From Phallusia mammillata (taxonomy: Eukaryota), in contig OZ281496.1 in assembly GCA_965637545.1 (NCBI GenBank), forward strand, positions 11,904,001 through 11,968,000: a stretch of DNA of 64,000 bases. Direction: 5' to 3'. The position numbers and the translations under genes are program-made. Under the pieces are notes generated by a model that worked only from the letters and a program-made list of their open reading frames with translations, did no database searches and had not been told where the DNA came from. This document shows, piece after piece, positions 1,261-52,849 of the stretch; the first letter of the stretch is position 1; each line of letters opens with the position of its first letter.

Positions 1261-2381
1261 GTCTAGATGATGTTTTGACAAGTTAAATTATTATGATGAA
1301 AATCCTTTTTGCAATTTCCATGATTCTTTCAGAGCCAAAACGATTCTTTTCAACACTGAAAAGGATGCAAACTTTTCTAAGGAATACCATTGTTTCCAAA
1401 AGACAGGCGTAAATATGCAGTCTGTTATGAGGATATTTCGTCAAAAGAAAGTTTGGCAATGTATAGCAATGCTTATTCAATTTTGTGATGTTGTAGTTGG
1501 AATAGGTTGGCAATAACTTTTTGTTGTTGAGACTATTGAGTTGCATTTAGTAACCACAACAAAAGCGACACTGACACTTATGGAAATTGCATGTGTGCTG
1601 CAACAATTTGAACTTTCTATCATGACTGTTGTGTGCCAACATGCTGTGTCTTTATTACATGCTGCTTAACAGTTTTATTACCATTGTGAGTTTAGTTCCG
1701 ATATCCGGTAACTCTGTGTTTACCAACAGAGCGTCACAGGATGGATGACGTCATATAGAACAATGGTATTACAGCTTTACAATAAACGCCCATGTCCATA
1801 TTATACTTGTATTGAAGCAAAACGCTCGAAAGAAGCATACACGCGAGTAGTAGCAGAATTTAGAATCTAAAAACTTGTTAGGAAAAGTTTTTTTTTACTT
1901 TTCAATTTTGACGCTTTTTCTGAGAAAGTGAAAACAAGTGTAGACGCGTTATTCAACGTAAAACGTGAAACAAAAAAAATGTTACATTTTGCATTTTCCC
2001 AGGCTAAGTTAAACTTTATTAGCCCGGTGGATTCAAACCTGATGATGCCATACAACTTAGGAGATTCTCGTAGTGGTGATAGTTTACAAGCAGGGGAAGA
2101 TCCCTATTTAGAAGTGGAATTCATTATTTCGAGGGTTCGCGGTCTGTAAGCCAGAATGTGTATTTCAGAAAAACGAAAATTAAAATTGCGCATAACAATG
2201 ATCAAAAGACAGCATGTGACACCACAGACAAGATAAAAAACAACAACATTACAATTGTGCGCAAACAATTGCATTTTTGTTAGTTGTTATGCAATAAAGG
2301 CTATTGGAGACAGTCGATTCTCAATTTTACATTGATTTAAACTGATTCAAAGGCACCAACTGACGCCCAAAAAAATTATAA
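1207..2381 (+). repeat. 1.17-kb direct repeat, copy A (host DNA on the left of endogenous virus 1)
   Basis: Near-identical to 5561-6728, from AATGCTCTGACGTGAC to CCCAAAAAAATTATAA. I saw two differing spots: a short indel near 1926/6278 and CAAC versus AAAA in an A-run near 2240/6590. Confidence 0.95.
2002..2149 (+). other. Probable terminal coding exon of an unidentified host gene (duplicated at ~6348-6495)
   Basis: Pyrimidine tract and CAG acceptor (CATTTTCCCAG|GCT), then open AKLNFISPVDSNLMMPYNLGDSRSGDSLQAGEDPYLEVEFIISRVRGL*; protein family not recognised. Confidence 0.4.
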
Positions 2382-3677
2382 TATATAGTCCGCCATTTTG
2401 ACTATGTCCTCGTCGATTGGCCTCTCCTGCAACAATTCCACCATTACCTCTTTTGCCAACTCTATCATGATCTCGTTCGTTCTTGATCCCTTTATCTCTT
2501 TTTGAGACCCTGTCTCAGGATTTGCCGCATCCTCCGGCCACATTGCCTGAATGAACCTCCGTTTCATAGGCTGGAGATCGCCAAGACTTGCCAATTTGAT
2601 CATTGGGTTTTTCGTATTTGTTGTTATATACGCACATGTCGCCTTGTTGTCTTGGCGATCTCCATGGGTCTTCGCACTCCAGTTAGAGTGATACATAAAT
2701 TTAACTGCTGAGATGAGCGCGTCATTGTTGAAGAAACTTGACCCCGCATCATCTATCTTTAACACCTTATGTTTGTGGCGCAGCGCCATCTGCCCCACTC
2801 CCTGCGAGTCGTTGGTCAAGGTACTCGCATACTCCATGGGGAACAAGAACTGACCTAATAAGGTCTTGCCCTTGCCTGCTGCCCCATGGAGACAGAAGTG
2901 GGGTGCGAAACGGATCCCATCCTGCTCCTCGTTTCGCGCCTCTAGCGCTGCGCACACCAGAGCGATCTTCAGCTCGAACGTGTTAAGCTTCCCCTCGTTC
3001 CACTCTATATGTTTTGCCTGGTTGATGATGTCGTTAATGATCTTACATCCATCTTTTACAGACCATTCCTCGTATTTCTTTTTATTGACTCGCCGGAACG
3101 CCTTCTTCATCTTCCGGTTCGCCTTCCCGAAGCTCACGGTGTTATATGCTCTTTTTGCGAGCGTTTCCGGGAAGGCGAAGTCCTTCTCAAAGAGGCGTTC
3201 CTTGAAGGCATTGCAGCTCGGCTTGGTATCAAACGAGTTTGCTACCTCCTCGGCGATCTTCTGCCAACGGGACTGGTTTCCATATTTGTTTCGCTCGTTC
3301 CCTATTTTTTCTATTAGCTCTGGTGGGATTATAGCTGTCTTTTTGTACATATAACGAATGTACGCATTCATATCCTTGACAGGGGCGATATACAGAACGT
3401 TTATGCCCATGCTTGTCAGGATCCGGGTCACACTTTTCTTGGTTAGCGGCGTTGGCCTGCCACTGCCAGTCTGATTGACACCGATGTATAGCCCATGTCG
3501 GTGGCCCTGGTTGGACTGGCCCCGCTCTGAATTCCCCAGGTAAATTACGCCACTGGGTATTTGGTGGATCCCCTCTACCTCCGACTCTGTTGTAAAGGCC
3601 CACTTTCGCGCGCGATAGTTTGCGTCTTCTTCTTGCGGTAGATTCATCCTTGTATACTTCGAATAGCTCTTGTTCAA
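2376..3677 (-). CDS. rep: Replication initiator: HUH endonuclease plus SF3 helicase (first ATG at 3647)
   Basis: RCR motif I RKWAFT, motif II GHRHG, motif III YIRYMYK; Walker A HGAAGKGKT, Walker B VLKIDD, motif C YITTN, Arg finger PMKRRF; the stop codon lies in the duplicated host flank. Confidence 0.9.
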   Translation of the reverse strand: MNKSYSKYTRMNLPQEEDANYRARKWAFTTESEVEGIHQIPSGVIYLGNSERGQSNQGHRHGLYIGVNQTGSGRPTPLTKKSVTRILTSMGINVLYIAPVKDMNAYIRYMYKKTAIIPPELIEKIGNERNKYGNQSRWQKIAEEVANSFDTKPSCNAFKERLFEKDFAFPETLAKRAYNTVSFGKANRKMKKAFRRVNKKKYEEWSVKDGCKIINDIINQAKHIEWNEGKLNTFELKIALVCAALEARNEEQDGIRFAPHFCLHGAAGKGKTLLGQFLFPMEYASTLTNDSQGVGQMALRHKHKVLKIDDAGSSFFNNDALISAVKFMYHSNWSAKTHGDRQDNKATCAYITTNTKNPMIKLASLGDLQPMKRRFIQAMWPEDAANPETGSQKEIKGSRTNEIMIELAKEVMVELLQERPIDEDIVKMADYIL

Positions 3678-3789
3678 GTAACTTTAACGTAGCGTTATTT
3701 TCAGCAACAGTTTTGTTGATATCAGATTTATAAAAGTTCTTAGCTATACTTTGCACTGTAGACGAAGCAGGTAATTGTTCACTGTACAT
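3229..3789 (-). CDS. 186-aa ORF overlapping the 5' part of rep in another frame (NS2-like arrangement)
   Basis: ATG at 3789 (MYSEQLP...); a counterpart with the same frame offset and similar length is in element 2 (46570-47136). Confidence 0.6.
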   Translation of the reverse strand: MYSEQLPASSTVQSIAKNFYKSDINKTVAENNATLKLLEQELFEVYKDESTARRRRKLSRAKVGLYNRVGGRGDPPNTQWRNLPGEFRAGPVQPGPPTWAIHRCQSDWQWQANAANQEKCDPDPDKHGHKRSVYRPCQGYECVHSLYVQKDSYNPTRANRKNRERAKQIWKPVPLAEDRRGGSKLV

Positions 3790-3835
3790 ATTGTAATGAT
3801 AATAAACACAACGAAACACAACATATATACACTTT

Positions 3836-3891
3836 CGTTGGTACCGGTACCACATCATCGGTACTGATTTTAAGTGGTACCGGTACTAACG
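3836..3891. promoter_or_regulatory. Intergenic stem-loop between capsid stop and ORF3/rep; candidate replication origin
   Basis: Arms CGTTGGTACCGGTACCAC (3836-3853) and GTGGTACCGGTACTAACG (3874-3891): 18 bp with one G-T pair, 20-nt loop; no canonical NANTATTAC. Confidence 0.55.
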
Positions 3892-5361
3892 TGGATTGCA
3901 CAATATAACTTTTGCTGACATGGTGTATGGTATTGTGATATAATTGTCGGTCTTTGTTGCGTATACTTCAGCTCCTGCCGACTCTTGGCTGTACGCCACT
4001 GCACACAGATCCTTTTTGATTGATTCCTCGTATATGTGCATCTGAGTATGCATTAGTTTCCCCGATGGTGGTTTCCCTTGTGTGACATCATACCACGGTG
4101 TTTCATCCATTGTGGATGCCGTGTCATTTGTTGATGTAGAACTTGCAATGCATGTAGTATGCGTGTCCCTTTGGAGGAACTTAATTTTTATCACCGTGTG
4201 GTCATCACCCAGCTGGTATCTTGTCATGTTCGGAAACGATTGAAGCGGAAACTCTGTACTGTCAGTATCGAACACGAGAGTTGACACTTGTCCAAAGTCG
4301 AATTTGTTGTCGTACACCATGCTATCAGTGTCCCAAGCCACGTCCATGTACACCATTGGTAATGTCCTGCCACTATCTTCCTGCCTGTTGAGGCATGCTG
4401 CTGGCCACAGTACAATGTTCCAGTCGGCACACTTAAACATCTCGTACTGCGACCCCATTCCCGTTGCTATTATTTCATTTAGACTGTTGTATGACGTCAG
4501 TCCTTGAGGTCCAAAGACTTTCCATCTTCTTGATGCTACTGATCCTCTGTCCCTGCCTAGGCATAGCTGCCTTGATATGACGTCACTGTGGACTATTGAT
4601 TGGTTTGCTATCGCCGGGTAAGCAACGCCTTCAGCCGTCGTCGTAGACTGCCAGTTGTACCACGGTGCCCAGTTTGTCTGCGGTGCTCCCTTGTAAAACC
4701 AGATGAATCCCTTGGTAACCATGGTGTAGGTACATGTAGGACTAGTTGGGTGCATTCTGGGTATGGCCATGGTACGGGTTCCAGACCTTCCCCCGCCTGA
4801 GTTCCCCGCGACACTTTGTCCAAGCCTTGCTTGTTTGGCAGGAGGGTCTCCTCCTCCTCCTTCATCGTCATACATACTGTCCCCATCATTGAGTTCCATG
4901 TCATCTAATTGACTTGTCGGTGGTGACGTTGCTGAAAAACCTCTTTTCCTCATAGCTCCGTCTGCTGGTATGTTGGTGGAGGTGTTTGGTTCTCCTGCAG
5001 CAGCCTTCTTAAGTTGTCTGTTGCGATTGATCTTCTTAAGCCTTGCCCAATCCTTTTTTTGATTGGGCATCTGAGGTAATACCGCCTTTTTAAGTAAAAA
5101 TATATTGCGCACAGTTGCAGCAGCAGGGCCAGTATGATGAGAAATATCTCGCAGTAAATCGTCGTCTGCAGTATTGTATTGCCAGTATGCACTGTTTCCA
5201 AGCTTCCCGTATTGTTTGTCGTGTTCTCTACACTTTGCATCTAGTTCAGATGTTACTTCTTCCCCTATGCTATTCCCAGGCCCACAATGTGGATGTCCAG
5301 GTATTGTAATACCACCAGTTGCGACCTTCTTAGTCGAGCGCAGCGGCATAATGATCAACAT
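3886..5361 (-). CDS. Capsid protein, 491 aa, with N-terminal parvovirus-type phospholipase A2
   Basis: Ca-loop IPGHPHCGPGN, catalytic DAKCREHDKQY and YNTADDDL; basic patch KKDWARLKKINRNRQLKK; Gly-rich linker and PPAKQARL; beta-rich C-terminal ~300 aa with QYEMFKCADWNIVLWP. Confidence 0.9.
   Translation of the reverse strand: MLIIMPLRSTKKVATGGITIPGHPHCGPGNSIGEEVTSELDAKCREHDKQYGKLGNSAYWQYNTADDDLLRDISHHTGPAAATVRNIFLLKKAVLPQMPNQKKDWARLKKINRNRQLKKAAAGEPNTSTNIPADGAMRKRGFSATSPPTSQLDDMELNDGDSMYDDEGGGGDPPAKQARLGQSVAGNSGGGRSGTRTMAIPRMHPTSPTCTYTMVTKGFIWFYKGAPQTNWAPWYNWQSTTTAEGVAYPAIANQSIVHSDVISRQLCLGRDRGSVASRRWKVFGPQGLTSYNSLNEIIATGMGSQYEMFKCADWNIVLWPAACLNRQEDSGRTLPMVYMDVAWDTDSMVYDNKFDFGQVSTLVFDTDSTEFPLQSFPNMTRYQLGDDHTVIKIKFLQRDTHTTCIASSTSTNDTASTMDETPWYDVTQGKPPSGKLMHTQMHIYEESIKKDLCAVAYSQESAGAEVYATKTDNYITIPYTMSAKVILCNPR
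4950..5240 (-). CDS. 96-aa single-pass membrane protein overprinted (+1 frame) on the PLA2 region
   Basis: TM segment EIFLIILALLLQLCAIYFYL, basic KRRYY..KKR, PPPTY, C-terminus QTEL; same-length homologue at 45243-45533. Confidence 0.75.
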   Translation of the reverse strand: MQSVENTTNNTGSLETVHTGNTILQTTIYCEIFLIILALLLQLCAIYFYLKRRYYLRCPIKKRIGQGLRRSIATDNLRRLLQENQTPPPTYQQTEL

Positions 5362-5370
5362 ATTAATTTT

Positions 5371-5530
5371 ACTTACCTTATATACTTCCTCTTTCTCCTT
5401 TCTCCTATTCTCCTAGTACCAGTACCACTTCTGTGGTACTACTGCTATGTGGTACTGCTTATAACACCCTCTATGTGGTACTGGTACTTCAATATTCTAT
5501 TATATCCATTAACCCATTGATCTAATAGGT
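5371..5530. promoter_or_regulatory. Capsid-upstream region: TATA/donor-like GTATATAAGGTAAGT, reiterated AGTACCAC motifs and inverted repeats
   Basis: Inverted repeat AGTACCAGTACCAC (5415-5428) / GTGGTACTGGTACT (5475-5488); small hairpin AGTACCAC-TTCT-GTGGTACT (5421-5440). Confidence 0.55.
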
Positions 5531-5560
5531 ACCATTATTTGGTACTGTGACGTCAGAATA

Positions 5561-6728
5561 AATGCTCTGACGTGACAAAGGGGTACGACCAACAAAAAAG
5601 GTTGGGAACCCCTGGTCTAGATGATGTTTTGACAAGTTAAATTATTATGATGAAAATCCTTTTTGCAATTTCCATGATTCTTTCAGAGCCAAAACGATTC
5701 TTTTCAACACTGAAAAGGATGCAAACTTTTCTAAGGAATACCATTGTTTCCAAAAGACAGGCGTAAATATGCAGTCTGTTATGAGGATATTTCGTCAAAA
5801 GAAAGTTTGGCAATGTATAGCAATGCTTATTCAATTTTGTGATGTTGTAGTTGGAATAGGTTGGCAATAACTTTTTGTTGTTGAGACTATTGAGTTGCAT
5901 TTAGTAACCACAACAAAAGCGACACTGACACTTATGGAAATTGCATGTGTGCTGCAACAATTTGAACTTTCTATCATGACTGTTGTGTGCCAACATGCTG
6001 TGTCTTTATTACATGCTGCTTAACAGTTTTATTACCATTGTGAGTTTAGTTCCGATATCCGGTAACTCTGTGTTTACCAACAGAGCGTCACAGGATGGAT
6101 GACGTCATATAGAACAATGGTATTACAGCTTTACAATAAACGCCCATGTCCATATTATACTTGTATTGAAGCAAAACGCTCGAAAGAAGCATACACGCGA
6201 GTAGTAGCAGAATTTAGAATCTAAAAACTTGTTAGGAAAAGTTTTTTTTTACTTTTCAATTTTGACGCTTTTTCTGAGAAAAAATGTAGACGCGTTATTC
6301 AACGTAAAACGTGAAACAAAAAAAATGTTACATTTTGCATTTTCCCAGGCTAAGTTAAACTTTATTAGCCCGGTGGATTCAAACCTGATGATGCCATACA
6401 ACTTAGGAGATTCTCGTAGTGGTGATAGTTTACAAGCAGGGGAAGATCCCTATTTAGAAGTGGAATTCATTATTTCGAGGGTTCGCGGTCTGTAAGCCAG
6501 AATGTGTATTTCAGAAAAACGAAAATTAAAATTGCGCATAACAATGATCAAAAGACAGCATGTGACACCACAGACAAGATAAAAAAAAAAAAACATTACA
6601 ATTGTGCGCAAACAATTGCATTTTTGTTAGTTGTTATGCAATAAAGGCTATTGGAGACAGTCGATTCTCAATTTTACATTGATTTAAACTGATTCAAAGG
6701 CACCAACTGACGCCCAAAAAAATTATAA
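5561..6728 (+). repeat. 1.17-kb direct repeat, copy B (includes only the right end of the 1068-1260 MITE)
   Basis: Near-identical to 1207-2381. Confidence 0.95.
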
Positions 6729-9208: not shown

Positions 9209-10744
9209 TTGCTAAATTCAATATGTGATGGAACAATTACGGATCGCATCGGAATACTGGGTGAAATTAATTGTTCCAACATGTTTTCTTGTTTCTCAAA
9301 AGAAAAGATCAACATAAAAAGCATTCAGGTGTGTGACGGAAAAGTGGATTGTGACGACAGCTCAGATGAATTTTTTGAAACCTGTAAACACACCCGTTTT
9401 TATTGCCAAATTAAAGACAAAACTTCTATTGACAGAAAAAAGTTTTGTGACGGAATTATTGATTGTGACAATGAATCCGATGAAAGCAAATGCCGTTGCG
9501 AAGATAAACGATTTTATTGCACAAATAAACAGCCTTTGTCAGTTGAATGGAAATTGGTCCAGAATGGAATTCTGGATTGTTCGGACGGAAGTGATGAATG
9601 TGTAAACTTAGCTGGGGACGCATTTGCAGACGTCAATGAAATGATCGCCAATCCAATATACCGAGCAATTTTCTGGATAACAGCTGTGTTAGCTTTAGGA
9701 GGAAATTTATATGTATTTGTTGCAACTGCTCACAGCTTATGGAATGTTCACAGAAACCAAAACCTTTATATCAGCACCAGCATTTTCATTCTAAATCTCT
9801 GCTGCTCTGATTTTCTCATGGGAATTTATCTACTTACAATTATAATCCAAGGAACTCGATTTTCTGGTTCATACTGTTTGTTTGATAAAAAATGGAGATC
9901 AAGCAGTTTCTGTTCAGGACTTGGAGCACTTGCAATTATTTCTTCGGAGGCATCGGCATTTACGATGACAGCCATGACCACTTTTCGACTTGTATCAGCT
10001 TTTAAACCATTTACAATTCGAAGTGTAGGTGTTCTTAAAGTTTTATTTGCCGAATTGTTTTGCTGGATTTCGGCTGTTGTTTTGGCAACAGTTCCTTTAC
10101 TAAAAGTCACTTCAGAATATTTTACAACTGATGTTTGGTTTCCAAACAACATTATTGGAAATGATTTTGTTTCCAGGGAAAACATATCACTTCTTGCAGA
10201 AAGAATTATTGGTATAAAAACAGAAAGTTGGAACAATGTGAAACGAATTATAGAAATGACATTTCCTCGCAATCCAATCAAAGGGGAGTTAGGATATTAT
10301 GGAGAAACAAGCCTCTGTATGCCACGTTTGTTTGCCGCAACCAGTGAATTTGCTTGGTAATATTCAACTTTCCTTATCACAATCAATCTCCTCATGTTTA
10401 TCTACATGGTGGTTGCATATGTTCTCATCTACAAACAGGGCAACCGCATGAATGGATCCAAAAGCATTGATATCAGTTTCAAGATGCAGAAGAGAATCTC
10501 GAGGTTAATTTTGACCGACTTCTGTTGCTGGATTCCAATTTGTGTCATGGGATATTTAAGTCTTGGAGGAATCAAGATACCACCAGATGCATATGTGTTG
10601 AGTGCTTGTCTGTTGCTTCCAATCAACAGCGCTCTTAATCCCTTACTTTATTCAAAAGAATTAGAGGATTAACTTGCCAGGACAAAGAAATGGCTGGTGG
10701 GGAAATTGCCGTCTTTACGATCATCTACAAATCGGTCATTGTAA
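9209..10744 (+). pseudogene. LDLa-repeat class A GPCR (GRL101/RXFP-like) with two in-frame TAA stops
   Basis: LDLa repeats CDGKVDCDDSSDE, CDGIIDCDNESDE, NGILDCSDGSDE; TM1 WITAVLALGGN, TM2 NLCCSDFLMGIYL, TM6 LILTDFCCWIPI, TM7 LPINSALNPLLY; frame continues through TAA at 10358-10360 and 10670-10672. Confidence 0.85.
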
Positions 10745-12518: not shown

Positions 12519-13490
12519 AAGGGGCGGCTCGTGCTAGGGTGCTGCGGAGCTGCAGCACCCCCTAAATATTTTCACCTAATATTCCTACCACAACAATACA
12601 GATAACTTTCATGATACTTATTTTTTATTCCTGAATAATTTTTTTTATTTCCTGAATAATTTAAGTATAATTTCCGCCTTGATCGGCATTTTTTTTTTTA
12701 AAATTATGCCCTTAATATGTTATCTATGGTGGAACTGCAGCTCCAGATTCGTGACGAATCATGACGTTTTACACTTGTGCGCATGTGCACTTGGAAAAGC
12801 TACATGCCGGGCGAAATAGGCGACTGGGTGCTGCGGCTCGCGCAGCTCCACCAATCACGCAGCGTGTGAACCGGCCGCTGTAGTTGTGTTGTCTGTTTCG
12901 GGTCTATATAGTGCTCCAAAACCAAACCCGTTTGCTATATTCTATGTTCGACAGTGAGTACAGTTAAACATTTTTTTGCCATGTTTTAATTTATTTGTTT
13001 GAATGTTAGTCGTGAATTTTGAGACTGTAAGTGGGCATCAGTTTTTGCAGTTAACATTGAATTGGAAAGTGTATCTAGAAAAAGAGAAAGGTCATCTAAC
13101 ACTTTGAAAAGTCACGATTAACATTTATAATAAAAACCTGAATAAAACGTTAAGAAAACTGGGATAAAACATCTGCTATTCAAAATATGTCATGCAGGAA
13201 TAAGCAACCACAAGAACTATACTCACACTGTGAAGTTAAATGCCTTGCTGAAATTCAGGCAATATTAAATGCAGAACAAACAATTGCACAAGCAACAGGA
13301 ATTTTGAAATACCTTAGTGATGACAATTTCAACCATGTGGAGTTGTGGACAGTATTTGCAACCAAGTACAATCTTGTGTATTGATATAATGGACATGTTA
13401 TGTTTTTTTTAAACAGTAGCTGCTAAATTGCTTCACAAATGTTTCTTAAGAATGAACATTCTACAGGGGAGATAGTAGTGACCACCAAAC
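12519..13490 (+). mobile_element. hAT-derived non-autonomous element; inverse copy at 52850-53722
   Basis: End AGGGGCGGCTCGTGC; ~870 bp colinear with the reverse complement of 52850-53722, which ends GAGCCGCCCCTG. Confidence 0.7.
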
Positions 13491-14139
13491 ATACGGGTCT
13501 GGTGTACTTTCTTGACCAAACGCAATAACTTCCGAACCCTATGACGTAACCTTACGATATTGATATATAATGAACTACGTCACAACCCGGATACGTCACA
13601 CACATCACTATGACGTCATCATAGAATTTTACAGGCCTTCAAAAAAACGCCATTTTGTGAAATACTCATCGTAGCGAGCCCAAACTTTATACATAACGTC
13701 ATCATACCTTCTGATGACGTCATGCAAAAAATGACGTCAATCGCTCATCATTAACACAACTTTTTTACATCTTAAACTAAATTAACCCTGTGACGCGACC
13801 AACGCAATCACAACAGTCGCGTCTCTGCCGTAAAACAGAAGTAAGGTACCATTCAACACAAATTTTACGACAAAACAGTCCTTTTGCCTAAAAGCGTCAC
13901 AACAAAAGCAGTTTTCTCGCCTTTTCTTCTTCTTCTGACATTGACAAATATTATTAATACAAAATATATCATCAAAAACGCTTCATTTTGTAACTAGGCA
14001 TATGATTTCCATGAATCCGCGAATTATGACGATACTGGGTTCCTTTGATCTCTTATATCCCACACGAGCAAAGTACGAAAGAGGCATACACTGAATCCAA
14101 CACTGCAGTTTATGAGCCTACTGGGCAAAAGGCAGAGCG

Positions 14140-16250: not shown

Positions 16251-17563
16251 GCCTCTGAAGGTACAGAAACAAAAAATCGCCCTTAAAAAGGGCACACATT
16301 TTTGCATCACGAATGGCTGGCACCTTGTCGTGGTGTGATCTCACAACGCCTCCGCCAATGGATCTTCTGTCAAAAAATAGATTTTTGTTTTCTGTGTTTT
16401 TATTCGTTTTTGGTTAAATTTATTGACTTATACGCAATGTTCCCATCGACATGGACCCTATATAAAATATAACCGAAATATGGCTAATATAAAACTAAAA
16501 AAACACTATGGCTTTTTTGGCGAAACTAAATATAGTTTTGTAAACAAATCTTTGCATTTATACGAGCCATCACATATTACACGCAATCTTTTTGCCATAA
16601 CAATCTGTTCCAGCAACTTCTAGGTCGTAGAAAATGTATTTTGCATCTTATAACAGCTCAGATCTCGGTTTACTTTTACTGGTAGGAAGATTTTGACTAG
16701 TCCAAAAATTGTCAAAAAGACAAAATAGGGTCACAAGTTGAAAACATGTACATTTCTTACAAATAAGGACAAAAATTTTTTTTTTTTCACATTACTCTAC
16801 AAAATAAGAGCAAATCTAAGAAATAAGAACAGTATGAAAACCCTGCTTACTCTGTAGCAAACAGTATTTGTTTCCGCTTGTCTGTTTTTGCATTTTGTGT
16901 GTGTTACTTTGGCAACAATCAAGATCTTCTGATTAAAAGGTTTATAGACTGTCTGCTCCCAGTTAAAATTAGTAATGTGCGTTCTGCATTTTTAGAATAA
17001 TAAGCTTTCATTTTTTGTTTGAGCCTATATTAATCGCGTTTTCACGTACTATCAGATGTTCCTTTTTTGCACAAACGGCCAAAAACTCAGTTAAAGCTGC
17101 AAACACTACCAAACAAGGCAGATCCTCAATTTGCTGAGAGAGTAGTTTCAATGAATTTACCTAACGACTAACGACATTTCAGCTTTCTTTGCTCCCATGT
17201 TTTGTCATCCGAAACTGTTTCTTAAATCTACAGTACGCCCACAGGCATAACGTTAACGACCGACTTGCGTTTGCTACAAACTTCAAAATTCGCAGCGAAT
17301 CTAAAATTAACAAGTTTAGATGTCCGCCTTTGTGCAGTTTCCTGGCGTACGCTACGTTTCAATTAGAGCACAACTATAAACCCATGTGCAAGGTGTTGTG
17401 ATTGATACCTCAATTTTCCGCATTTTGTTGAAAAATAACATACACATTTTGTTGAAAAATAACATTTATCTTCACATAGTGTAAACATATTTCATCTTGT
17501 TTCACCTGTTGAACGTCCACAACTATGGTGGCCCATCGTTGTCAAATAGTTTTGCATGAAAAA

Positions 17564-18000
17564 AATCGTTTTCATTTTAAAATCGTTTTCATTTTAAAAT
17601 TAATTTCATTTTAAAATCAATTTCATTTTAAAATTAATTTCATTTTAAAATCAATTTCATTTTAAAATCAATTTCATTTTGAAATCAATTTCATTTTGAA
17701 ATCAATTTCATTTTGAAATCAATTTCATTTTGAAATCAATTTCATTTTAAAATCAATTTCATTTTAAAATCAATTTCATTTTAAAATCAATTTCATTTTA
17801 AAATCAATTTCATTTTAAAATCAATTTCATTTTAAAAACGTTTTCATTTTAAAATCAATTTCATTTTAAAATCAATTTCATTTTAAAATCAATTTCATTT
17901 TAAAATCAATTTCATTTTAAAAACGTTTTCATTTTAAAATCAATTTCATTTTAAAATCAATTTCATTTTAAAATCGATTTCATTTTAAAATCAATTTCAA
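17564..18000. repeat. 17-bp minisatellite, ~25 copies, near-palindromic unit
   Basis: Unit AATCAATTTCATTTTAA with variants; flanked by GTGGCCCA(T/G)CGTTGTCAA at 17528, 18016, 18056, 18111, 18151. Confidence 0.95.
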
Positions 18001-19370: not shown

Positions 19371-20615
19371 TTAATGCACATCAGGAAGTTCTTGGAACCT
19401 TTCTCTAAGAAATAAGTAAGCAGAAGAAGCATCACAGGATTCTATATCTTCAGGGTGGCTGAGGATGTTTTTGCATTTTTTAACAAAATCATTTGTAGGC
19501 CAATAATCTGGACATTCCAGCACACCAGACATTCCTGCTACATCTTTTAGATCATCTTCTGTTAAAGATAGGCCTTTTTTGCTTGCACCATACTTTTCTG
19601 GAAATGAAAACATGTGATTAGGCACTCCACATGGAAGTTGAATTTCAGCTTTTTGTGCTCTGATTCTGTGACTGTTCCAGCTATCAACAAAGATGGAGCA
19701 TTCCCTCGTTATAATTGGACCATATACGTAAAACAAAAGGGAGCGATCCGCTGGGCTTTCCCGGTTATATTTTTTCTCAACTAACAATGATTGTAACTGA
19801 ACTTTGAAAAACTTCTCAAATCGCTCATGTAAATCCCGCCACCATCTTTCCATTTTGTTTGTGTTTGAAGGCCCATACAGAATTGAATCTGTTGCATCTG
19901 TGTAATACCCAATATGTTGTATGAGATAAGAGTGAATTGATGCCATTTTACCAGTTTCTGTTCCACGATCCAACCGAAGGTGTACTGGTAACAATAAAGT
20001 TTCACAAAGAAACTCTAAGTATTTCTTCCCGATTACCAAAGGACTTGAATTTGATTGTGTAACAAACAGAAACATGATTTTCCGTGAAAATGTGTCCATA
20101 CAGCCATAAATCCCCAAAGGAAAGGTATAATTTTGGTACCCACATAACTTGTCATGACCATCAAGAGATACTACCCAGAATGGGCCATCAGATACAAATG
20201 GATGCTTGTCCCGTTTTTTCTTGTGCTGTACATTTCTGTGTGCCAGACCATTGGGATCCAAATCTTGCATCACTTTATATACCAAGTGTCTTGGAACCTT
20301 AAGATTATATGTACATCGTACTTTTCGATGCATTGCTCTGTAACCAAGCAGACATCCTGGACCCAACAACTCCTTATCTACAGCCTTTTCTATGTCTGAT
20401 TTTGTAACATGACTGTCAACATAATATATCTCAAAATGTCTCATTCTTCTATCCAAGGTTGATAAACTCCAAGCATAGCTTTTAAAGTCCCTTATCATGT
20501 AATCTAGTATTTCAGATCTTTTTAAGTTTTGTTTTACATACAACTTCAAATCTTCTTTTAATTGGTTGTCACTTTTCCATGACTGTACAAAGTTAGCTAC
20601 CTGTTCCAACATCAT
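19371..20615 (-). CDS. IS3/IS481-type (IS3EU-like) DDE integrase/transposase, intact 414 aa
   Basis: N-terminal HTH (SLSTLDRRMRHF; LGYRAMH); catalytic SLDGHDKL...GCMDTFSRKI...RLDRGTE...NKMERWWRDL. Confidence 0.85.
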   Translation of the reverse strand: MMLEQVANFVQSWKSDNQLKEDLKLYVKQNLKRSEILDYMIRDFKSYAWSLSTLDRRMRHFEIYYVDSHVTKSDIEKAVDKELLGPGCLLGYRAMHRKVRCTYNLKVPRHLVYKVMQDLDPNGLAHRNVQHKKKRDKHPFVSDGPFWVVSLDGHDKLCGYQNYTFPLGIYGCMDTFSRKIMFLFVTQSNSSPLVIGKKYLEFLCETLLLPVHLRLDRGTETGKMASIHSYLIQHIGYYTDATDSILYGPSNTNKMERWWRDLHERFEKFFKVQLQSLLVEKKYNRESPADRSLLFYVYGPIITRECSIFVDSWNSHRIRAQKAEIQLPCGVPNHMFSFPEKYGASKKGLSLTEDDLKDVAGMSGVLECPDYWPTNDFVKKCKNILSHPEDIESCDASSAYLFLRERFQELPDVH

Positions 20616-20774
20616 GTCCTAACACAAACTTTAGAAAAATAGGCCTTTTGTGAACAGTACCATATCTATGGGGATAAAAACGATAATTATCACACCAATA
20701 TTCTCAAACGTTATTAGTGAAACTAATTTAGCAGTAAAATGTGATAGGTCACAACAAACTTGGCAAGACAGAGG

Positions 20775-22033
20775 TTAGCAGTGAACCTTAGTAAGATTCA
20801 TTAACTCACAATACTTGTTGCAATGATGGTTGCTTACAAATTCATTAATAGCAATTGCTGAAAGATTTCCAGCACAAAACATAATTTCTGTACTGTCACT
20901 TTTACAAAACAGATCCTTAGTTGCTATTTCTGGATCATAAAGCTGAAAACCTGTGCCTTGGACATCTAAAAGCATGAAGCTTTTGTTCGAGTATTCATAA
21001 CTATAATGCACCAAGCACTCTGCCTTCTCAACAACTTCAACTCTGCCCCTTTGTACTTCACCAGTGTTGTTGACGTATTTGGTAAACTTTCCTTCTACAT
21101 ATGGTTCAACAGTAGCAGCCTTTCCTTTGTATGTTGTGTAAAAAACTGTTTTGTACTCAAATGTTTCCCCCAAATCAGGAGGTGCTAGTGATCTAAATTT
21201 CTCAGTAACAGCTTTGGCTACGCTGTGCATCTGCACCTGCTTTTTTGCATGTGCTTCGAGGGTCAAACTCAAATCATTTGTTACAGTGTCTTCTGCTTCT
21301 TTGCGATAAGTTTTTAAAACCCAGCATTCTTGCTGTTCATGTTGGCGTTGTTTGACACAAAAGGCCTTGTAGGCATCTCTAAATGCTCCATGGGAAAACT
21401 GATTTTCTTCAACATCAAAGGAATCAGGTGGGTGTTGAAACCAATCTAAATTTTGCAATACAAATTCATCTTTGATTAATATAACTCGATTTTTTGGCAC
21501 TGACTTAACAAGTTTTCCAGCTCTTAAGAGTTTGGTGATTGAGATGGATGGTGGATTGATTAAGGGTATCTTTTGAAAGTCATTGTCATCATGATTGTGG
21601 TTGGTAGATTTGCTTGCACATGTTTTGGATACATTTGCTTGCTCAGAAATGGCTAAAAATCGTATCATAAAGAACTTTTTACCCTTCACCTGCTCAATCC
21701 GAGAACAAGATGGCCCTCTATCAGATGCCAAAACATCACAAGATCCAGATGGCTGATTGTAAAACTCCTCACAAGCTTTTTTAATGCTATCAAGAGAAAG
21801 TTCACTGCTGTGGTATGGAACAAAGTCCCGGGTATCCATTGGTTCGAACTTTTTTAATCTTCCTGATGGCACACTGGCCATTTTTTGAACCATAATTTCT
21901 GAAGTTACATTTTTTTCAGGTTTCTTTCCTTTTCGTTTGACTGCTAACCGAGCTTCCAACTGTTCCCAAGTCTCTTTTCGCTTCATATCAAATAAATTTT
22001 TTTGTAAAAGTTGTGTTTTTGCCAAACATTCTA
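20775..22033 (-). CDS. Alpha-kinase (eEF2K/MHCK/TRPM7-type domain); main exon, with a decayed 5' exon likely up to ATG ~22565
   Basis: FSHGAFRDAYKA, VLKTY, VEPYVEGKFTKYVNN, AECLVHYSYE, MLLDVQG, LYDPEI, FCAGNL...HHCNKYC; acceptor TTTGTTTAG near 22033. Confidence 0.9.
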
Positions 22034-23793
22034 AACAAAGTAAATAATAAAAAAATAATAGAAGCTAGTTTATACATCATGCAGCAGACTGTACTTGACC
22101 TAGCGTCCATTAAAGCAAAACATCAGTAAAACGCCACAAACTTATGCCTATTACCACAATTTTGTGGTCTTTGTTGTCTACAAATCGCTACAAATAAAAG
22201 TTACTGCAGTAACATATATCTATTTTGTGAAACATCTTTACATTCTTTAGGGCTCCACGGCCACGCTAAGTTTGCCCGTAATCGGATGAGTTAAACATCA
22301 CGTGCTTATGTAGTGTAATGGATCTTTCCATACACATCGGGATTGTCGCTTCGTAAAGAATTGCCTTTTCCATCGAACCTGATCCAATGCTTTACAATGT
22401 TATTGTTTGGCATTACAAATCAATACTCTATATATTTTTTTTATTTGATTTGCGGCGGTTGGTGACTTGCAATTGGGTCAGCATGATCACACGCGGGTGT
22501 AACCATGTTAACAGGCATTTCCATGCACGGTTTCTTGCTTTGGATGCAATCATTCATCATCGCCATTTTAAATATTTTTGCGGGACTGTACCTAACTCCT
22601 GTTTTACGGCAGAGACGCGACTGTTGTGCTTGCGATGGTCGCGTCACAGGGTTAACTTAGTTTAAGGTGTGAAAAAGTTGTGTTAATGATGAGCGATTGA
22701 CGTCATTTTTTGCATGACGTCATCAGAAGGTGTGATGACGTCGTGTATAAAGTTTGGGCTCGCTACGATGAGTATTTCACAAAATGGCGTTTTTTAGAAA
22801 GCCTGTAAAAAAAATTATGACGTCATAGTGACGTCATTATGTGTGTGACGTATCCGGGTTATGACGTACTTCATCATATATCAATATTGTTAAGTTACGT
22901 CATAAGGTTCGGAAGTTATTGCGTTTGGTCAAGAAAGTACACCGGACCCGATTAGTTGACATCGCAAATATGCCCATATTTGCTGGACTTTCTGCAAAAC
23001 ACTCCGATTGCAAAACAATTTCAAAAGCAGATGAAAAAGAAGAGCGCCCAACACAAGAATTTTTTCTCATTATTTTATCGGCTAAAAAAACGATTTTTTA
23101 AACCGTTGGTCAGCATCAAAAACACATTTGATTTCTCAGATTATTGTCTTCCGGATATGCGGCTTGACCCAGCCGAAAAAGCTCTATAATAAACATTCTG
23201 TCTGTTTCTTCCACTTTCTGGGTCCTTGCCACCAGGTCTTGTTTGGCCTTGTTCCTGAACACATTGCCGCTGGTTCATTTAATTCCAAGTGCCTTTAGGA
23301 CTTTGTAATCAGAGTCCCTGCTGATTTGTCCCATAATCGAGTGACGGAATAAAAATTCCTTTTGGTATGCTTTAAACAGCGATATACTGCACCGCAAGCT
23401 TTTTTAGACTACGTCATAGTCATGATACAATAAGACACAAAGCACATCAAATGGGTAATCCTGCTCTACCATTGACAAGTTAGTTCCTGTAATTGTTAAG
23501 TCGTGCGCTCGCTGTTTGCATTGACAATTGTTGTAAAACACCGCTTAGCAGATTGTCAAATACTGCAACTGCTGGTTATAAATTTATTGTTGATTACACC
23601 GTGCACAGTATGAAGCTTAAACTCGATGCTGTTGACGAAATGCATTTCAAATACAATTTAAATCTGAAAAAGGTTCGTAGCATGTTCGTTGTTACTACAT
23701 GTTAGTCCTACAGCAGTTCAGCACACAGAAGATATTCTGGCATGCTTAACTTAGTTTAAATGTGACCGTTTTTTGCAGAGTATCGGGACCACA

Positions 23794-29949: not shown

Positions 29950-31950
29950 TTTCTTCAACCGGTACTTGATCGAGTAAATCTGAATGCACGTGACAAACAG
30001 CTAGATGATTTAAGCGAACCTAGGTAGTCGTGCTTCTCAGCCAAGTTTTTAGACGCCGAAGTGTTGAAAAACTTCGCTCGCATTCACAAGAGCTGACAGG
30101 GCACACCAAAAGCAGTTTGAGCAAAACAAACACCTGCGTGAATAACTGGCGTAGCTCGGAACTCATAGCGCGATAAGCCAACTTCGCTTCGTTTACAGAA
30201 CTTGCCCCCGTGTGCTGCTTAAACATCGGCAACTGTACAGATAGTTGAGTTACATTCATTTGAGGATATTTTGAAATTAAATCTAAATTTGTTGCTGTGC
30301 CCTTCATTATCATATTTTTGATTTTCAAATATGTTTGGAAGCTTGAGTTGCGGACATCATACCGTTTCTGCAAACACCCAAGTAAACAATCAATAAACTC
30401 CACGTACAACAATCTGTAATGGTCTTTGGCACATTTGGCGTGGAAGTGCGGTGAGGATCCAACGAAACGCGGTGTCGGCTGCCGACGGCGTGGCACAGAA
30501 ATTTCATCAAGCCCCAAATTCGCTGATATCTTTGTTGCTTCTTCAAAAACGTTCGTGTACATTATAGGGGCACGAAATACTTGTATCTGCTTCGCTGTTG
30601 TCGCTACAGCCTCTATTGATCCTGCATAACATACAAACCTAAGCATTCTGTGTCTAAAAATTGGTACAATTACTACCTGATAAATTTGAAGAAGGTGCCT
30701 GCATCGAGCTGTTTAGTTGTTCCAGCAGAGCTATTGTTTTTTTAACAAGGTATAAAGCTAAGAATGTTTCGGTTTTCTCGAAACGATTCAAAAGAGCACT
30801 GGCTTTGGTGGCAGAATCTGCACTCCCCTCCGACATGCTGCGAAGACTTTCAGTTACAGCAGAATAATTTTCCAATACCGATAAAATTGCCGACAATCGA
30901 CACAGCAAACGAGTTGGACAAAGCGGCCGAATCGATGCTTTTGTATTGATGAGCTCCGTACTACAAGGAACAACGCTTTCAATCACATCCTGCAAACATT
31001 AATCATGATTTAATAATCACACAAAAAACACATAAAATAGTTACGTCGCCTTACCGTAAACTTTCCAGATCTCTTAAATAACACGCCTAGTTCATGGACC
31101 CATTGGACGGTGTCCCTGAAAAACGGACAACTTGCAATTGATTCCTGCATAACCAAGTTTGCCAAGTGTGACTGGCAATGGAAATATGTAGCGAGTGGGT
31201 ACTGACTGCTAATAACGGATTGACACCCATTGTACTTCCCACTCATATTTGAGGCCCCGTCGTACGTTTGTGCACGTATTTGACCAGCAGATAGGGAAAA
31301 TCGAGTCAGAACGTCTCAAATCATCCTTGCAATTGCATCTCCAGGTGTCTGCTGCATTTTGACCAGACACAGAAAATCTTCATGTACACATAGCTCCGAA
31401 TCGACATGGCGGATGCAAACAGACTCTTGCTCACTTCCACAAATATCTTGTGTGCCGTCGACCATCACTGCGAACATACCATTGGCTTTAATTTTAGACG
31501 CTAAAAATCGTAAAATAAAGTGACTGAACATTTGTGTCATTTCTTGCTGACCACGAAAGTTGGTTTTTCGCTGGAGGAACTCTTTTAACTCGGCACTGTC
31601 TTCAGCACGAAGTTTTAGGAGTTGGTGGTAATTTCCTTCTCCGTCGCCATGGCCTCGGATAGTCAGACCTTGTCGCAACAAATATCGCAAAGACGTGAAC
31701 AATTTTATCAGCGATCGCCTGGCAGCAGCTTGTTGTTCGTTAAAGCCTGTGTTTATTTGAAGTGCAACAGACAAACAATTCGATTGAGTTCCATTGTTGA
31801 CAACAATGTGAATTATGATGTAGTATTATGTCGTTAGATTTGTGTTAGACTTATATCTTATTTTTGGCTCAAGGGTATGAAAAATATTGGGGGAGACAGA
31901 TGAATGGAAGTCCCCCCCCAACCAAATTTTTTTGGGGGGACATGCCCCCG
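29950..31950 (-). mobile_element. hAT Tip100/ZMYM1-like transposase, fragmented
   Basis: RYLLRQGLTIRGH, FAVMVDGTQD, FHCQSHLANL, LCPTRLL, PVSSCECERSFSTLRRLKTWLRST. Confidence 0.85.
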
Positions 31951-41970: not shown

Positions 41971-44900
41971 ATCTTGTAAGTTTAGACTAAACTGATGCTA
42001 GTTTTTGTTGTGATTTTGTAAAATATTGGTGGATGAAAATGTCAGTCCGCAATCATCACAGAGTAAGTTGTTAAACTGAAAAAAGGTGTATAGAAGTACT
42101 CTAGTTTTAGTTGATGTGACAGATAACTGTTTCTTAGTACTACTTGTATGCTTCAATAAACGTCCGAAAAGCCTTATGGTTCTGAAAATCTGATGATATG
42201 GGCCAAAAAATGCAATTTATTTTAAAAATGTCGCAATTTACGTTTGACGTCCAAATTTTGGGGTCAAATCCCAACGGATTTCAATGAAACTTGCAGGAAA
42301 TACAAATAACAGTTATTACTTCTCAAAACGACCTAATAGTAAAAATAAAAAACAGATTAAATGTAATTACTGCAAATTACACTTTGGAAAAACAACGATC
42401 TATAATTCTGTAATCAAAAAACGCAAGAAATTGACACTGGAATGCAATGAGTCGCACACACATGCAATCGTGAAGGTATTTAGCTCCTATGCTGTAAAAA
42501 GCAAAAGAGAACTTCGATTCTGCACGAAATATTAATCATACGAAAGTTGATTATCAATGCCGGTTGATTACCCAACCAACGGACTCCCGGTTTATCGTCT
42601 TGCCCCAAAACAAGTCGTATTATATACAGGAAGTCCAGTTAAACAACCAGAAATGTACGTTAAGGTTTTCATGCACTGTACAGATGTTTCAAAAATTTGT
42701 GGAATGCTTGGTGCTAATAAAGCACAAGCCGAAAATAAACCAACTCGTGTGGCAAGTAAAATTATTCACCGCGATGTAACCAGTGGCGAAACAGCCAGCA
42801 CCAAGCAGGATAAAGTAAAATCAAAAGGATGTGGAAGATAAGAAAGTCGGAGCGGATAATCACAGTGCCGATGAGTGGAAAACCATTTTAAGGCGGATAA
42901 GATAAACAAACCAATAAATTACAGACTGGAAAGTCTACACTAGATATTGGAAAAAATAAGAATCTTCCCCTCATATCTCTTCTTGCATCTAACAGTTATG
43001 GGGCGTATCAAAAATAACAATACACGGTAAAAAATCTTTTGAAGTTTAATAAGGCCAGTTAAATCATGGAAAGAATTAAAATCTTAAGCGGTTTAAAAAC
43101 TGCAAACCGATTTGGACCGGATAATAATTTGACCAAACCGGAACAAAACATCAACCCCAAAATACACATTTTTAAAAAACTAAACGAACCCGGACCCCTG
43201 AAAATGATCTAGTCCTAAATACTTAATTGTTAAACTCAATGAACTAACAAGTGCGGTTCTTGTGGAAGAATCACAAAATGAAACCAGCGGTGTCTTCTTT
43301 GTAGCCAAATCTTGCTTTTCACCAATGCAGAGAACGCTTTGCAGGAATTAGACACATTCAGGATAAGTTTTGTTGATGATAAGACTGGGGCGGACTCGTT
43401 CTAGATATTTTTACTTAAAGTTCCTACCACAATCTTACAGATAAGTTTCAGTATACTGATTTTTTATTCTTTAGCAATATATAATAAGTATAATTTCCGC
43501 CCTAAACGGCATTTTTTTCCCTTTTTAATAAAAAATAGGGCGAAAAAATTCTATTTGAATAAGATAATAAGTGTTTTAAATAATATGTTTAACTGGAACT
43601 GCAAGAAATCTGCACAAATTTCCAAGACACAAGAATACATCTGTTCTTTCTGTTGACAGAGAGACATCTTTCTGTTGATAGAGAGACACATTTTTTATGT
43701 GCAAAACGCAAACATGATTACACAATATTCACTCTTACTTAAAAAGCAGTATAATGTGCACAACTCGGGATCTTCCAGACAAGACATGCTTACTGAACAA
43801 TCCCAGCCATGTAAAGAAACAAACAAAACCTTTACGTCATCATTTATAACCAACCTATGAACATGGCAACATTGTAAAGCTTAACTTAGCTTTAAATTTG
43901 TAACCACAGTTACACCTGTTCGAAACCTGGGCTTTTGTCTGACTAACCTGATTTTGGGGACTAAGCTGTTTTCTTCTTTCAAATCAAATATAACATTACT
44001 TTTTAGCATGTAAACAATCCATTTTTTTGCAAGTTTGGTGCACAGTATGACACATAGTTTTAAAAAAATCCTTGCAAACCCTAAAACCTTTCATATCAAT
44101 TGCTCGTGTTTTAAGTAGTTTTAAGTAAATTTTGACGCACAGAACAAAGCTAGCAGTTTAAAGTGTGGTGATATATTCTTAATCAGTTTGACATATTTTG
44201 ACAAGCTAAGCAACAACTGACACGCACCTCCCATTCCCAACACCCGTATTCTAACTTTCCCATTAAATGCAATGGAAACAGAGAGATATTTTGTCGCACA
44301 AAGATTCTAGCATCGCTTTCAAAACGACAGCCAGACCACACGGTGCATGCGATGTATGTGTGTTCGGTGCGAAATTTCTTTTACATGTATGACGTAACAA
44401 TGAACGGTTAACTATATTATATACTCATGAGTATAAAAATAAGACAATAAAATGACGTAAAGTTAATTTGACTAAAAAAATTAGAATAATGTGTACCATT
44501 TTAATCCCATAACCAATTCTCTCTGGTGTGTGGCTGCCCGTTGGTTTTTGTTTGCGTAATCAATCATGACAGTATGTGAAATGGTGTGCATATCAGTAGA
44601 TAGGTTTCACGCACTGAGGTCAAACGCAATGACTGTCTTCCCCCAACGCCAGCTATGGTGACAACTGGGCCTGACGTGGGGAATTTGCCGATAAAAATAC
44701 GAATGCTTCAGGTACCGGAAACGAGCAATCGTCCAATGGTTCGTCATGTGATAAATCGAAATAGAGCCCCAGTGGCGCCAGGGTGCATCAGTCGTGTGGT
44801 GTCGGCCCCAACTTGAAGTAATACGTATTTTTTTCAATTTTAGTAAAAGAGCAGGGTACAAATGTTTAGCAGCGTATAAATAATGCAACAATTTTTGTTA

Positions 44901-45133
44901 GAACAGAACGTTTAGCAGCGTACGAATAATGTAACAAAACAGCATAAAGATAAAGGGACGTGTGAGTAGTTAATTGTGTAAAACAAACTCCATATTCTAC
45001 TATCTGGCACTGGCACAACAGTTATTTTTAAGGCGGCACCGCACCAGTAGGATGAGGTAGTGTGTGCAGTGCTGGTGTCAGTGGTGTCAGAAAAGGGTAT
45101 ATGAGGTAAATGAAAAATTATTTAAAAGTCGGA

Positions 45134-46479: not shown

Positions 46480-46569
46480 ATGTATATTACTTTTGTTTTT
46501 TCGTTTGCATGATTTATGGTTCGTTGTATTTGAGTTTGCATGCACATTAAAAATTTGTTAACCTTACAG

Positions 46570-47136
46570 ATGTTTCCTTGTAAAACAGAGACCGATAAGG
46601 TTATCCATAACTATAGCAAACAAAGTGTATATGAAACAACTGCGGAATATGCAAAACGAAGAGAAAAAGAGTGTGAATGGTATCGAGAGCAATGTCACGG
46701 AAGGTACAAGAAGCAGGAGATGGGCAGTAACAACCGATGTCTTTACCGATGGCGCAAGCAACATCCTTCAAGGCCCAACGTTTGTGTTGTACTGGGGGCC
46801 CAGGGAGCAAGGAAGGTCCGCCAATCATCACAGGCATGGCATATTCAGTTGCACCTGTCAGACGCCAGGTCAACAACCATCGCCCCGGACCAAGAGCGCG
46901 GTTATAAAGCTACTGAAGCAGATGGGAATAACTGTTACTTACATTGCCCCAATAAGGGATATGGCAGCATATGTTCAATATGTTTACAAGAGCGATCGGA
47001 GTGCCATACCAGAAAATCTGAAAGAACTGTGCACAAAACAAAAATACACAAACCGCCAAGGATCAAGCTACTACGAAACAATTGCAAAGGAGGTAGCGAA
47101 ACAGTTTACAACGAAACCAAGCATGAATCAATTTAA
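46570..47136 (+). CDS. 188-aa ORF overlapping rep 5' region (homologue of 3229-3789)
   Basis: Same frame offset to rep; N-terminal KVIHNYSKQSVYETTAE versus SIAKNFYKSDINKTVAE in element 1. Confidence 0.55.
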   Translation: MFPCKTETDKVIHNYSKQSVYETTAEYAKRREKECEWYREQCHGRYKKQEMGSNNRCLYRWRKQHPSRPNVCVVLGAQGARKVRQSSQAWHIQLHLSDARSTTIAPDQERGYKATEADGNNCYLHCPNKGYGSICSICLQERSECHTRKSERTVHKTKIHKPPRIKLLRNNCKGGSETVYNETKHESI

Positions 47137-52810: not shown

Positions 52811-52849
52811 GTTTAGACAAACAGTACATGTCCATTAAATCAAAACACA

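Follow-up and report, generated by a model that had tools for sequence, protein, structure and literature searches.

A locus in the genome of Phallusia mammillata raises the question of how the genes for a parvovirus-type capsid protein and a non-parvoviral replication protein (Rep) came to be joined within animal DNA, and from what kind of virus they derive. The stretch analyzed here, referred to as the window, comprises 64,000 nt (assembly GCA_965637545.1, contig OZ281496.1, positions 11,904,001–11,968,000 of the forward strand). It contains an exon of an animal-type gene with an LDLa part and a relaxin/LGR-type G protein-coupled receptor part, so the host DNA is animal. Near its left end, a segment that we term B is enclosed by two direct copies of a longer sequence, A1 and A2, in the order X-A-B-A-Y, where X and Y are the outer flanks:

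1207–2381, no strand assigned: direct repeat copy A1, host-like, 1,175 bp, 99% identical to 5561–6728
2382–5560, minus strand: virus-derived segment B, 3,179 bp, recognized by its open reading frames (ORFs) and GC contrast, with ends set by the flanking direct repeat
5561–6728, no strand assigned: direct repeat copy A2, 1,168 bp, the first bases of which form one arm of the junction hairpin
5546–5577, minus strand: origin-like hairpin across the B/A2 junction, with 12-nt arms (11/12 paired) and an 8-nt loop

All genes of B lie on the minus strand. In gene sense, B consists of a 199-bp non-coding leader (5560..5362), the capsid gene cap (5361..3886), a 208-bp spacer, an overlapping ORF and rep, and its GC content is 0.46 overall (0.42–0.52) compared with 0.36–0.39 in the flanks. 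B is a real and young endogenous element, and its combination of genes is one that is common to the family Oomyviridae and is not that of a parvovirus. We estimate a probability of roughly 60% that 5560..2382 is the recently endogenised, almost complete genome of a small single-stranded DNA (ssDNA) virus. An earlier, sequence-only reading of this DNA had placed the element at 2382–5560, which is exactly the segment between the flanking direct repeats, and had called it virus-derived, endogenous and recent. The features that it described are present, and the pairing of a phospholipase A2 (PLA2) capsid with a non-parvoviral Rep was confirmed on the minus strand. Its account lacked the 1,175-bp duplication, the junction hairpin, the iteron-like repeats, the truncated end of Rep and a second copy at 45 kb. 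From its four open ORFs on one strand, cap, the 209-aa (amino acid) overlapping ORF and rep were retained, and the 96- and 98-aa ORFs inside cap are unsupported.

A host-like duplication and a hairpin at the junction

The two copies of A differ by three substitutions and two indel events, so the insertion must be very young, as the sequence-only reading had supposed. By composition, A is host-like DNA. Its 4-mer profile correlates with that of the host at r 0.93, against 0.67 ± 0.06 for mononucleotide-shuffled A, and the element's own AT-rich non-coding DNA, with an AT content equal to that of A, reaches only r 0.35. No credible ORF was found in A, and it was probably single-copy host DNA beforehand. 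Copies of an interspersed repeat in the left flank X are also present at 12.5, 43.4 and 53.5 kb. The possibility that A is the long terminal repeat of a retroelement was rejected, since the interior contains neither gag nor pol.

The junction between B and A2 (5560/5561) falls inside the loop of the hairpin, and the equivalent outer end of A1 (1206/1207) is at the same loop position. On the gene-sense strand, B opens with a half-loop and a 12-nt arm, and A closes with the complementary arm and the other half-loop, the host-side arm matching the viral arm at 11 of 12 positions. Folded as DNA, the hairpin has z-scores of −5.1 and −5.8, and none of 200 shuffled sequences was as stable. By our own estimate, an inverted match of 11/12 with a short loop would occur at a junction by chance with a probability of ∼2e-4. 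The junctions suggest that the viral Rep itself placed the element in the chromosome. The unisense order of capsid gene followed by rep, which the sequence-only reading had reported, is seen, but it may only reflect the point, at the hairpin upstream of cap, at which the molecule was opened.

A duplication that arose independently of Rep would look similar in some respects. Replication could have stalled at the palindrome and switched template after an ordinary insertion, or a heterozygous locus could have been misassembled; hairpins are fragile sites, and the few differences between A1 and A2 are at a level that alleles could show. An artefact of this kind is countered by the absence of gaps from the window and by the need of both novel junctions for read support in order to assemble. 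The boundary also lies inside the hairpin loop, with the arms on opposite sides of the junction, and we regard an origin independent of Rep as improbable.

The capsid protein

The capsid gene is the first gene of B:

3886–5361, minus strand: capsid gene, 491 aa, with a likely start at the second ATG, at 5349
5089–5313, minus strand: PLA2 domain of the capsid protein (residues 17–91), with matches to Pfam PF08398 and to parvovirus VP1-unique regions (VP1u) in the PDB

The protein is composed of the PLA2 domain, a basic stretch, a Gly-rich stretch and a core of ∼290 residues. Residues 17–91 match PF08398, the parvoviral PLA2-like domain, with an E-value of 1.4e-10, which is over the curated cut-off. 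In an alignment with VP1 of adeno-associated virus (AAV), the glycines of the Ca-loop, the His-Asp dyad with its Tyr and the downstream Asp are all kept, so that the complete parvovirus-type PLA2 attributed to the capsid N-terminus is indeed there with all of its catalytic residues. Sequence matches in the PDB, whether obtained with the single protein or with a profile, were all to parvovirus VP1 and covered only the VP1-unique region. The ∼290-aa core is without a detectable relative in Pfam, the PDB and 5.8 billion proteins, with the exception of one protein, P0004. This sole relative, found by protein and profile searches of the 5.8 billion proteins, is unannotated, 474 aa long and 41% identical, and it aligns from end to end.

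The Rep protein

Downstream of cap lies the rep gene, whose product combines a nuclease with a helicase:

2376–3647, minus strand: rep gene, 423 aa from ATG, encoding an HUH nuclease, a helical linker and a superfamily 3 (SF3) helicase
∼3614–3342, minus strand: HUH nuclease of Rep, from motifs and model
∼2915–2538, minus strand: SF3 helicase of Rep, from motifs and model

The ORF itself extends from 3677 to 2376 and encodes 433 aa from a TTG, with the first ATG at 3647. Relatives were collected by an exhaustive HMMER search with a 5-sequence profile, which returned 81 representatives from metagenome and SRA assemblies at E ≤ 1e-3 and 34 at E ≤ 1e-30. None of the 20 relative clusters that were looked up carries the name of a virus. 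Close relatives are located on contigs of 3.0–4.9 kb and a few on contigs of 9–41 kb, the closest on 3.0–3.7 kb and distant ones on 1.9–2.3 kb. The N-terminus of Rep is complete, because the relatives begin at the same position; an upstream exon or a frameshifted N-terminus was considered and rejected on the same grounds.

Rep contains WAFT (motif I), HRH (motif II), a Y-x-x-K motif III, Walker A GKGKT, Walker B IDD, motif C ITTN and RRF. Every motif of the earlier list, including the HRH of motif II, was thus found and is conserved among relatives. Conservation was counted over 66 relatives, with denominators that vary by position. In the nuclease, W26 is kept in 35/38, H61 in 37/40, Y109 in 42/44 and K112 in 43/44 sequences. 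The corresponding values for the helicase are 50/53 for K271, 49/55 for D309, 53/54 for N354 and 44–46/49 for R373, R374 and F375, and Walker B is DD in 44–49 of 55 family members. The distance from motif III to Walker A (Y109 to K271) is 162 aa, close to the ∼160 aa given before.

Searches with profiles did not assign Rep to a known family. By itself, it has no sequence match in Pfam or the PDB, and its profiles matched only generic AAA+ P-loop proteins in the PDB and neither Rep nor NS1. Among 33 family members, Pfam Viral_Rep matched none, Parvo_NS1 matched none even at E ≤ 5, and weak matches were obtained to PF00910 in five and to DUF5906 in six. An AlphaFold2 model built from the 66-sequence alignment (pLDDT, predicted local distance difference test score, 91.9) comprises a compact nuclease domain of ∼90 aa, a helical linker of ∼150 aa, the SF3 core and C-terminal helices. 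When this model was compared with BFVD using Foldseek, at least 500 matches were obtained at E ≤ 1e-3, all to HUH/SF3 replication proteins. The top matches (E 6e-12 to 1e-8, identity 10–17%) were a mixture of Reps of circular Rep-encoding single-stranded (CRESS) DNA viruses, parvovirus NS1, papillomavirus E1, adomavirus EO1 and polyomavirus large T antigen (LT). An earlier model from five sequences (pLDDT 60) gave nothing below E 0.05 against the PDB and weak mixed matches against BFVD. In the predicted structure, the fold of Rep is certain and its lineage is not, because the matches are spread over all five of these groups. Rep is far from every named Rep and is CRESS-like in motif I, in the DD of Walker B and in domain size. 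The description CRESS-like therefore holds loosely: these three features agree with it, and the lack of Viral_Rep matches and the mixed structural ranks do not. The accompanying statement that Rep is not a parvoviral NS1 was borne out by motif I, Walker B and the Parvo_NS1 result.

The element could in principle be a very divergent member of the Parvoviridae, with the order of capsid gene and NS gene produced by integration of a head-to-tail concatemer. The PLA2-bearing VP1u followed by basic and Gly-rich stretches is as in parvovirus VP1, both motif II histidines are kept, the spacing of 162 aa between motif III and Walker A is long, parvovirus NS1 is among the top structural matches, and a strong palindrome separates cap from rep. 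This origin is nevertheless very improbable, given that no family member matches Parvo_NS1, that motif I is conserved, that Walker B is DD and not EE, and that the nuclease domain is compact. The region upstream of cap is moreover non-coding and not the end of an NS gene, and the distant relatives are found on contigs of ∼2 kb, a size typical of CRESS viruses.

The element had also been called intact. The capsid protein aligns with its relative from end to end and the conserved core of Rep is complete, but Rep lacks the acidic C-terminal tail of 110–140 aa that is present in its two closest relatives. For its last sense codon and its stop, rep depends on the flanking repeat A1.

A perfect 16-bp inverted repeat lies in the coding region of rep, at 2572..2664 on the minus strand, and encloses the codons of motif C. 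Its DNA fold has an energy of −22.1 kcal/mol (z −5.6). It could be a cis-acting element or a coincidence; the second copy of the element ends before that point.

An overlapping ORF and putative control regions

Apart from cap and rep, B contains a further ORF and several repeats with possible regulatory functions:

3229–3858, minus strand: overlapping ORF, 209 aa as listed and 186 aa from ATG 3789, covering codons 1 to ∼140 of rep in a different frame
3836–3891, minus strand: palindrome between cap and rep with 18-nt arms (94% paired), consisting of the GGTACC-type repeat
5378–5384, minus strand: TATA-like box and, after it, a GTAAGT-type motif, immediately ahead of the start of cap and arranged likewise in the second copy
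5414–5540, minus strand: iteron-like repeats based on GTACCAC/GGTACC, upstream of cap

The overlapping frame is open in both copies of the element and in the same relative frame. It contains no stop in 137 codons of the first copy and none in 166 codons of the second, compared with 12/284 and 6/190 in the same frame over the rest of rep and 27/491 in cap. The products of the two copies show weak colinear similarity (E 4e-5). From these sequence features, the overlapping ORF is read as a real third gene, probably reached by leaky scanning. Past a TATA-like box at 3829–3823, the first ATG is that of the overlapping ORF (3789) and the next is that of rep (3647), with none between them, and the second copy is alike.

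The regions upstream of cap and of rep both carry inverted pairs of the GTACCAC/GGTACC-based repeat. Six of the 11 GTACCAC sites of the window are located in these two regions of ∼400 bp, and the iteron-like repeats include a perfect 14-nt inverted pair (5415–5428 and 5475–5488). The palindrome between cap and rep folds as DNA with −18.3 kcal/mol (z −5.6). These repeats would be the binding sites of Rep. No polyadenylation signal was found 3′ of cap or rep.

In both copies (5371–5384 and 45098–45111), a TATA-like box stands directly before GTAAGT or GTAAAT, ∼25–35 nt ahead of the capsid start. It follows that either the leader is very short, in which case leaky scanning to Met codons inside the gene would be favoured, or the motif is a splice donor.

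A second, older copy

A related element is located ∼40 kb from the first, in the opposite orientation:

45122–47707, plus strand: second copy as a whole, with the same order of cap, overlapping ORF and rep
45073–45090, plus strand: tandem 9-nt repeat before the TATA-like box, unlike the repeat of the first copy
45122–46479, plus strand: broken capsid gene, interrupted by two in-frame stops and by one or more frame changes, with one stretch unaligned, 41–58% identical to the first copy at the amino acid level
46540–47136, plus strand: overlapping ORF, open, 198 aa
46631–47707, plus strand: 3′-truncated rep that lacks motif C and the Arg finger and is free of internal stops, 51% identical to the first copy at the amino acid level

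The Rep proteins of the two copies share 51% identity, and that of the first copy is 53% identical to the database relative P0001. Since the two copies are as distant from one another as the first is from P0001, they represent separate insertions of different lineages. Neither a sequence nor an ORF resembling A is present near the second copy, and no further fragments of Rep or capsid genes were found elsewhere in the window. That two different lineages inserted within 64 kb suggests either that the genome holds many copies or that the region is a preferred one. Because two independent insertions were made into animal DNA, it is plausible that the virus infects this animal.

The presence of two copies within 64 kb, an HUH Rep and a junction at a hairpin would also be expected of a cellular mobile element, a Rep-encoding transposon and not the remnant of a virus. 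Against this, a capsid protein with a virion-type PLA2 is encoded. The copies, at ∼50% identity, are not recent transposition products of one another, the window holds no further fragments, and the relatives occur on short free-standing contigs. We therefore give this explanation almost no weight.

Mode of integration

Rep-dependent integration with template switching, which duplicated a target of 1,175 bp, is in our analysis the best fit to the arrangement of the locus, and we hold it to be somewhat more probable than all other routes together. A host site similar to one arm and half the loop of the hairpin at the viral origin would have been nicked by Rep, and the viral strand, itself cut at the origin, would then have been joined to, or copied at, this site. 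Copying would have stopped close to the end of rep, with a return to the host template at a point 1,175 bp upstream, and the outcome would be host A, virus and host A.

Several observations weigh against this interpretation. Nicking by Rep in the hairpin loop is presumed, and the 8-nt loop does not contain the canonical CRESS nonanucleotide. In checks of the window, the second copy displayed no flanking duplication or hairpin. The conserved core of Rep ends exactly at the B/A1 junction, and at least one relative, P0009 (456 aa), ends at about the same place. A natural stop, which would make A viral, accounts for this end of Rep as readily as a truncation does. Over its first ∼55 nt, A has a GC content of 0.50 and a possible second, marginal hairpin (z −2.2); because this part is GC-richer and perhaps structured, the viral end may reach into A. 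The X-A-B-A-Y order is that of the assembly. With respect to the nature of the virus, the parvovirus type of the capsid is established at the sequence level for the N-terminus alone, and Oomyviridae were compared from their descriptions.

Some of these points would be accommodated if the replicating unit were A+B (4,354 nt) and the insert a rolling-circle concatemer of 1.27 units, extending from a nick at the origin to a random stop. A would then be the long non-coding region of the element, or host DNA captured by an earlier read-through. In gene sense, B+A1 runs exactly from half-loop and arm to the other arm and half-loop, Rep would have a natural stop comparable to that of P0009, the GC-rich and structured beginning of A would be viral, and some relatives are indeed on contigs of 4.4–4.9 kb. 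The closest relatives, however, are those on 3.0–3.7 kb. A has the 4-mer signature of the host, which the proven non-coding DNA of the element does not, it offers no credible ORF and has no counterpart near the second copy, and the only mismatch of the hairpin falls in its arm. We consider an A+B unit the main alternative but unlikely, and retain duplication of a host target by Rep-dependent integration as the preferred reading.

Other features of the window

The animal-type exon mentioned above is an open exon of 383 aa at 9209–10360 on the plus strand; it encodes LDL-receptor class A repeats and a seven-transmembrane region of the rhodopsin type, and the PDB entries that match it best are those of the relaxin receptor RXFP1 and of the LH, TSH and FSH receptors. 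Two adjoining long intronless ORFs at 19371–22025 on the minus strand encode an integrase core (PF24764, E 4e-19) and an alpha-kinase (PF02816, E 7e-33) and may form a transposon with a kinase gene as cargo. Two further ORFs on the minus strand are probably transposase remnants, one at 30020–30646 with a hAT dimerisation domain and one of 599 aa at 60473–62272 with a weak match to DUF4371. The window also contains a tandem array with a 17-bp period at 17562–17999, the shifted copies of which are 92–95% identical, and a 360-bp inverted pair (13494–13849 and 22588–22950) with 91% identity. An interspersed host repeat family (77–82% identity) is represented at 755–953, 12520–13417, 43401–43537 and 52807–53722 and includes an inverted pair of ∼900 bp, at 12.5 kb and 53 kb.

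Comparison with known virus groups and with AAV integration

The mixture of a PLA2 capsid and a non-parvoviral Rep is not new in itself. The sequence-only reading had proposed a possibly undescribed virus lineage, with the parvo-like hybrid viruses (NIH-CQV/PHV) as the main precedent for the mixture. These viruses are now a classified family, Oomyviridae (order Lineavirales, class Arfiviricetes, Cressdnaviricota), ratified in 2025, which is defined by this gene combination (PMC12451638, PMC13426907). The family contains linear ssDNA viruses in 3 genera and 38 species, and the finding of endogenous copies in oomycetes has led to stramenopiles being predicted as its hosts (PMC12451638, PMC13426907, bioRxiv 10.64898/2026.04.22.720165). 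In a letter of 2026, most public Oomyviridae genomes were treated as reagent contaminants (PMC13141889). The element described here resembles Oomyviridae in its PLA2 capsid and non-parvoviral HUH-SF3 Rep, in a genome of a few kb and in the existence of related endogenous copies in eukaryotes. It differs in residing in animal host DNA, in contrast to stramenopile hosts and endogenous copies in oomycetes. Its gene order relative to the hairpin end, its overlapping ORF and its flanking duplication are not described for the family in those parts of the Oomyviridae accounts that were available. No named oomyvirid was returned by any sequence or structure search, and the tunicate literature contained nothing relevant.

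What the present element adds is its location in animal DNA, a lineage without named relatives, an overlapping ORF that is conserved, and the signature of integration. Tentatively, it may represent a lineage that infects animals and is sister to Oomyviridae, perhaps a family of its own, characterized by a PLA2 capsid, a deep-branching HUH-SF3 Rep, a conserved overlapping gene and Rep-driven entry at origin-like host sites with kilobase duplication, and active very recently. If this were true, it would be the first link of the parvo-like hybrid virus group to an animal host. A near-intact copy and an older, broken relative in an animal chromosome speak directly for the replication of viruses with this gene mix in an animal germ line, and the family of 81 unannotated Rep clusters, together with the orphan capsid core, points to ssDNA virus diversity that current profile libraries miss.

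Members of the Parvoviridae have a linear genome with NS on the left, VP on the right and hairpin telomeres at both ends, and PLA2 in the N-terminus of VP1 is found in only some of the subfamilies. Classification in the family is based on the SF3 helicase of NS1, with family-wide homology (PMC13426907), and its Walker B ends in EE (PMC9896142). The similarity to VP1 proteins (AAV, and densoviruses with a PLA2 in VP1u) concerns the catalytic residues and the basic and Gly-rich stretches that follow them. By contrast, the sequence of Rep is not that of an NS1, the capsid core goes undetected at the sequence level, and cap precedes rep in both copies. The integrated element also has a hairpin at one end only, the other end being in rep, and no terminal pair of hairpins is seen.

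With typical Reps of Cressdnaviricota (Circoviridae, Nanoviridae), the protein shares motifs I–III, Walker A, the DD Walker B, motif C, the Arg finger and a compact nuclease domain, and the element has, as they do, a stem-loop adjoining iteron-like repeats. It departs from them in the absence of a Viral_Rep match, in the second histidine of motif II, which is kept, in the ∼150-aa helical linker, in a loop without the canonical nonanucleotide and in a structural identity of 10–17% to any named Rep.

To our knowledge, integration of a eukaryotic ssDNA virus by its HUH Rep is known chiefly from work on AAV in cultured cells. At AAVS1, AAV integration is reported to be Rep-dependent and to be accompanied by partial duplication of the target (Henckaerts 2009, as cited in PMC2900306), and a polymerase-switch model has been proposed for it (in the summary given in PMC5714925). 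The locus described here is similar in that a direct target duplication of ∼1 kb flanks the insert and one junction is at a site resembling the viral origin. It differs in that the virus is of another lineage, the event took place in the germ line, and nicking of the host site and binding of Rep are deduced from the arrangement. The junction in the hairpin loop and the 1.2-kb target duplication form a natural record of how an HUH Rep may integrate a eukaryotic ssDNA virus, and, if our reading is true, Rep-directed integration in the manner of AAV would have a second, independent example.

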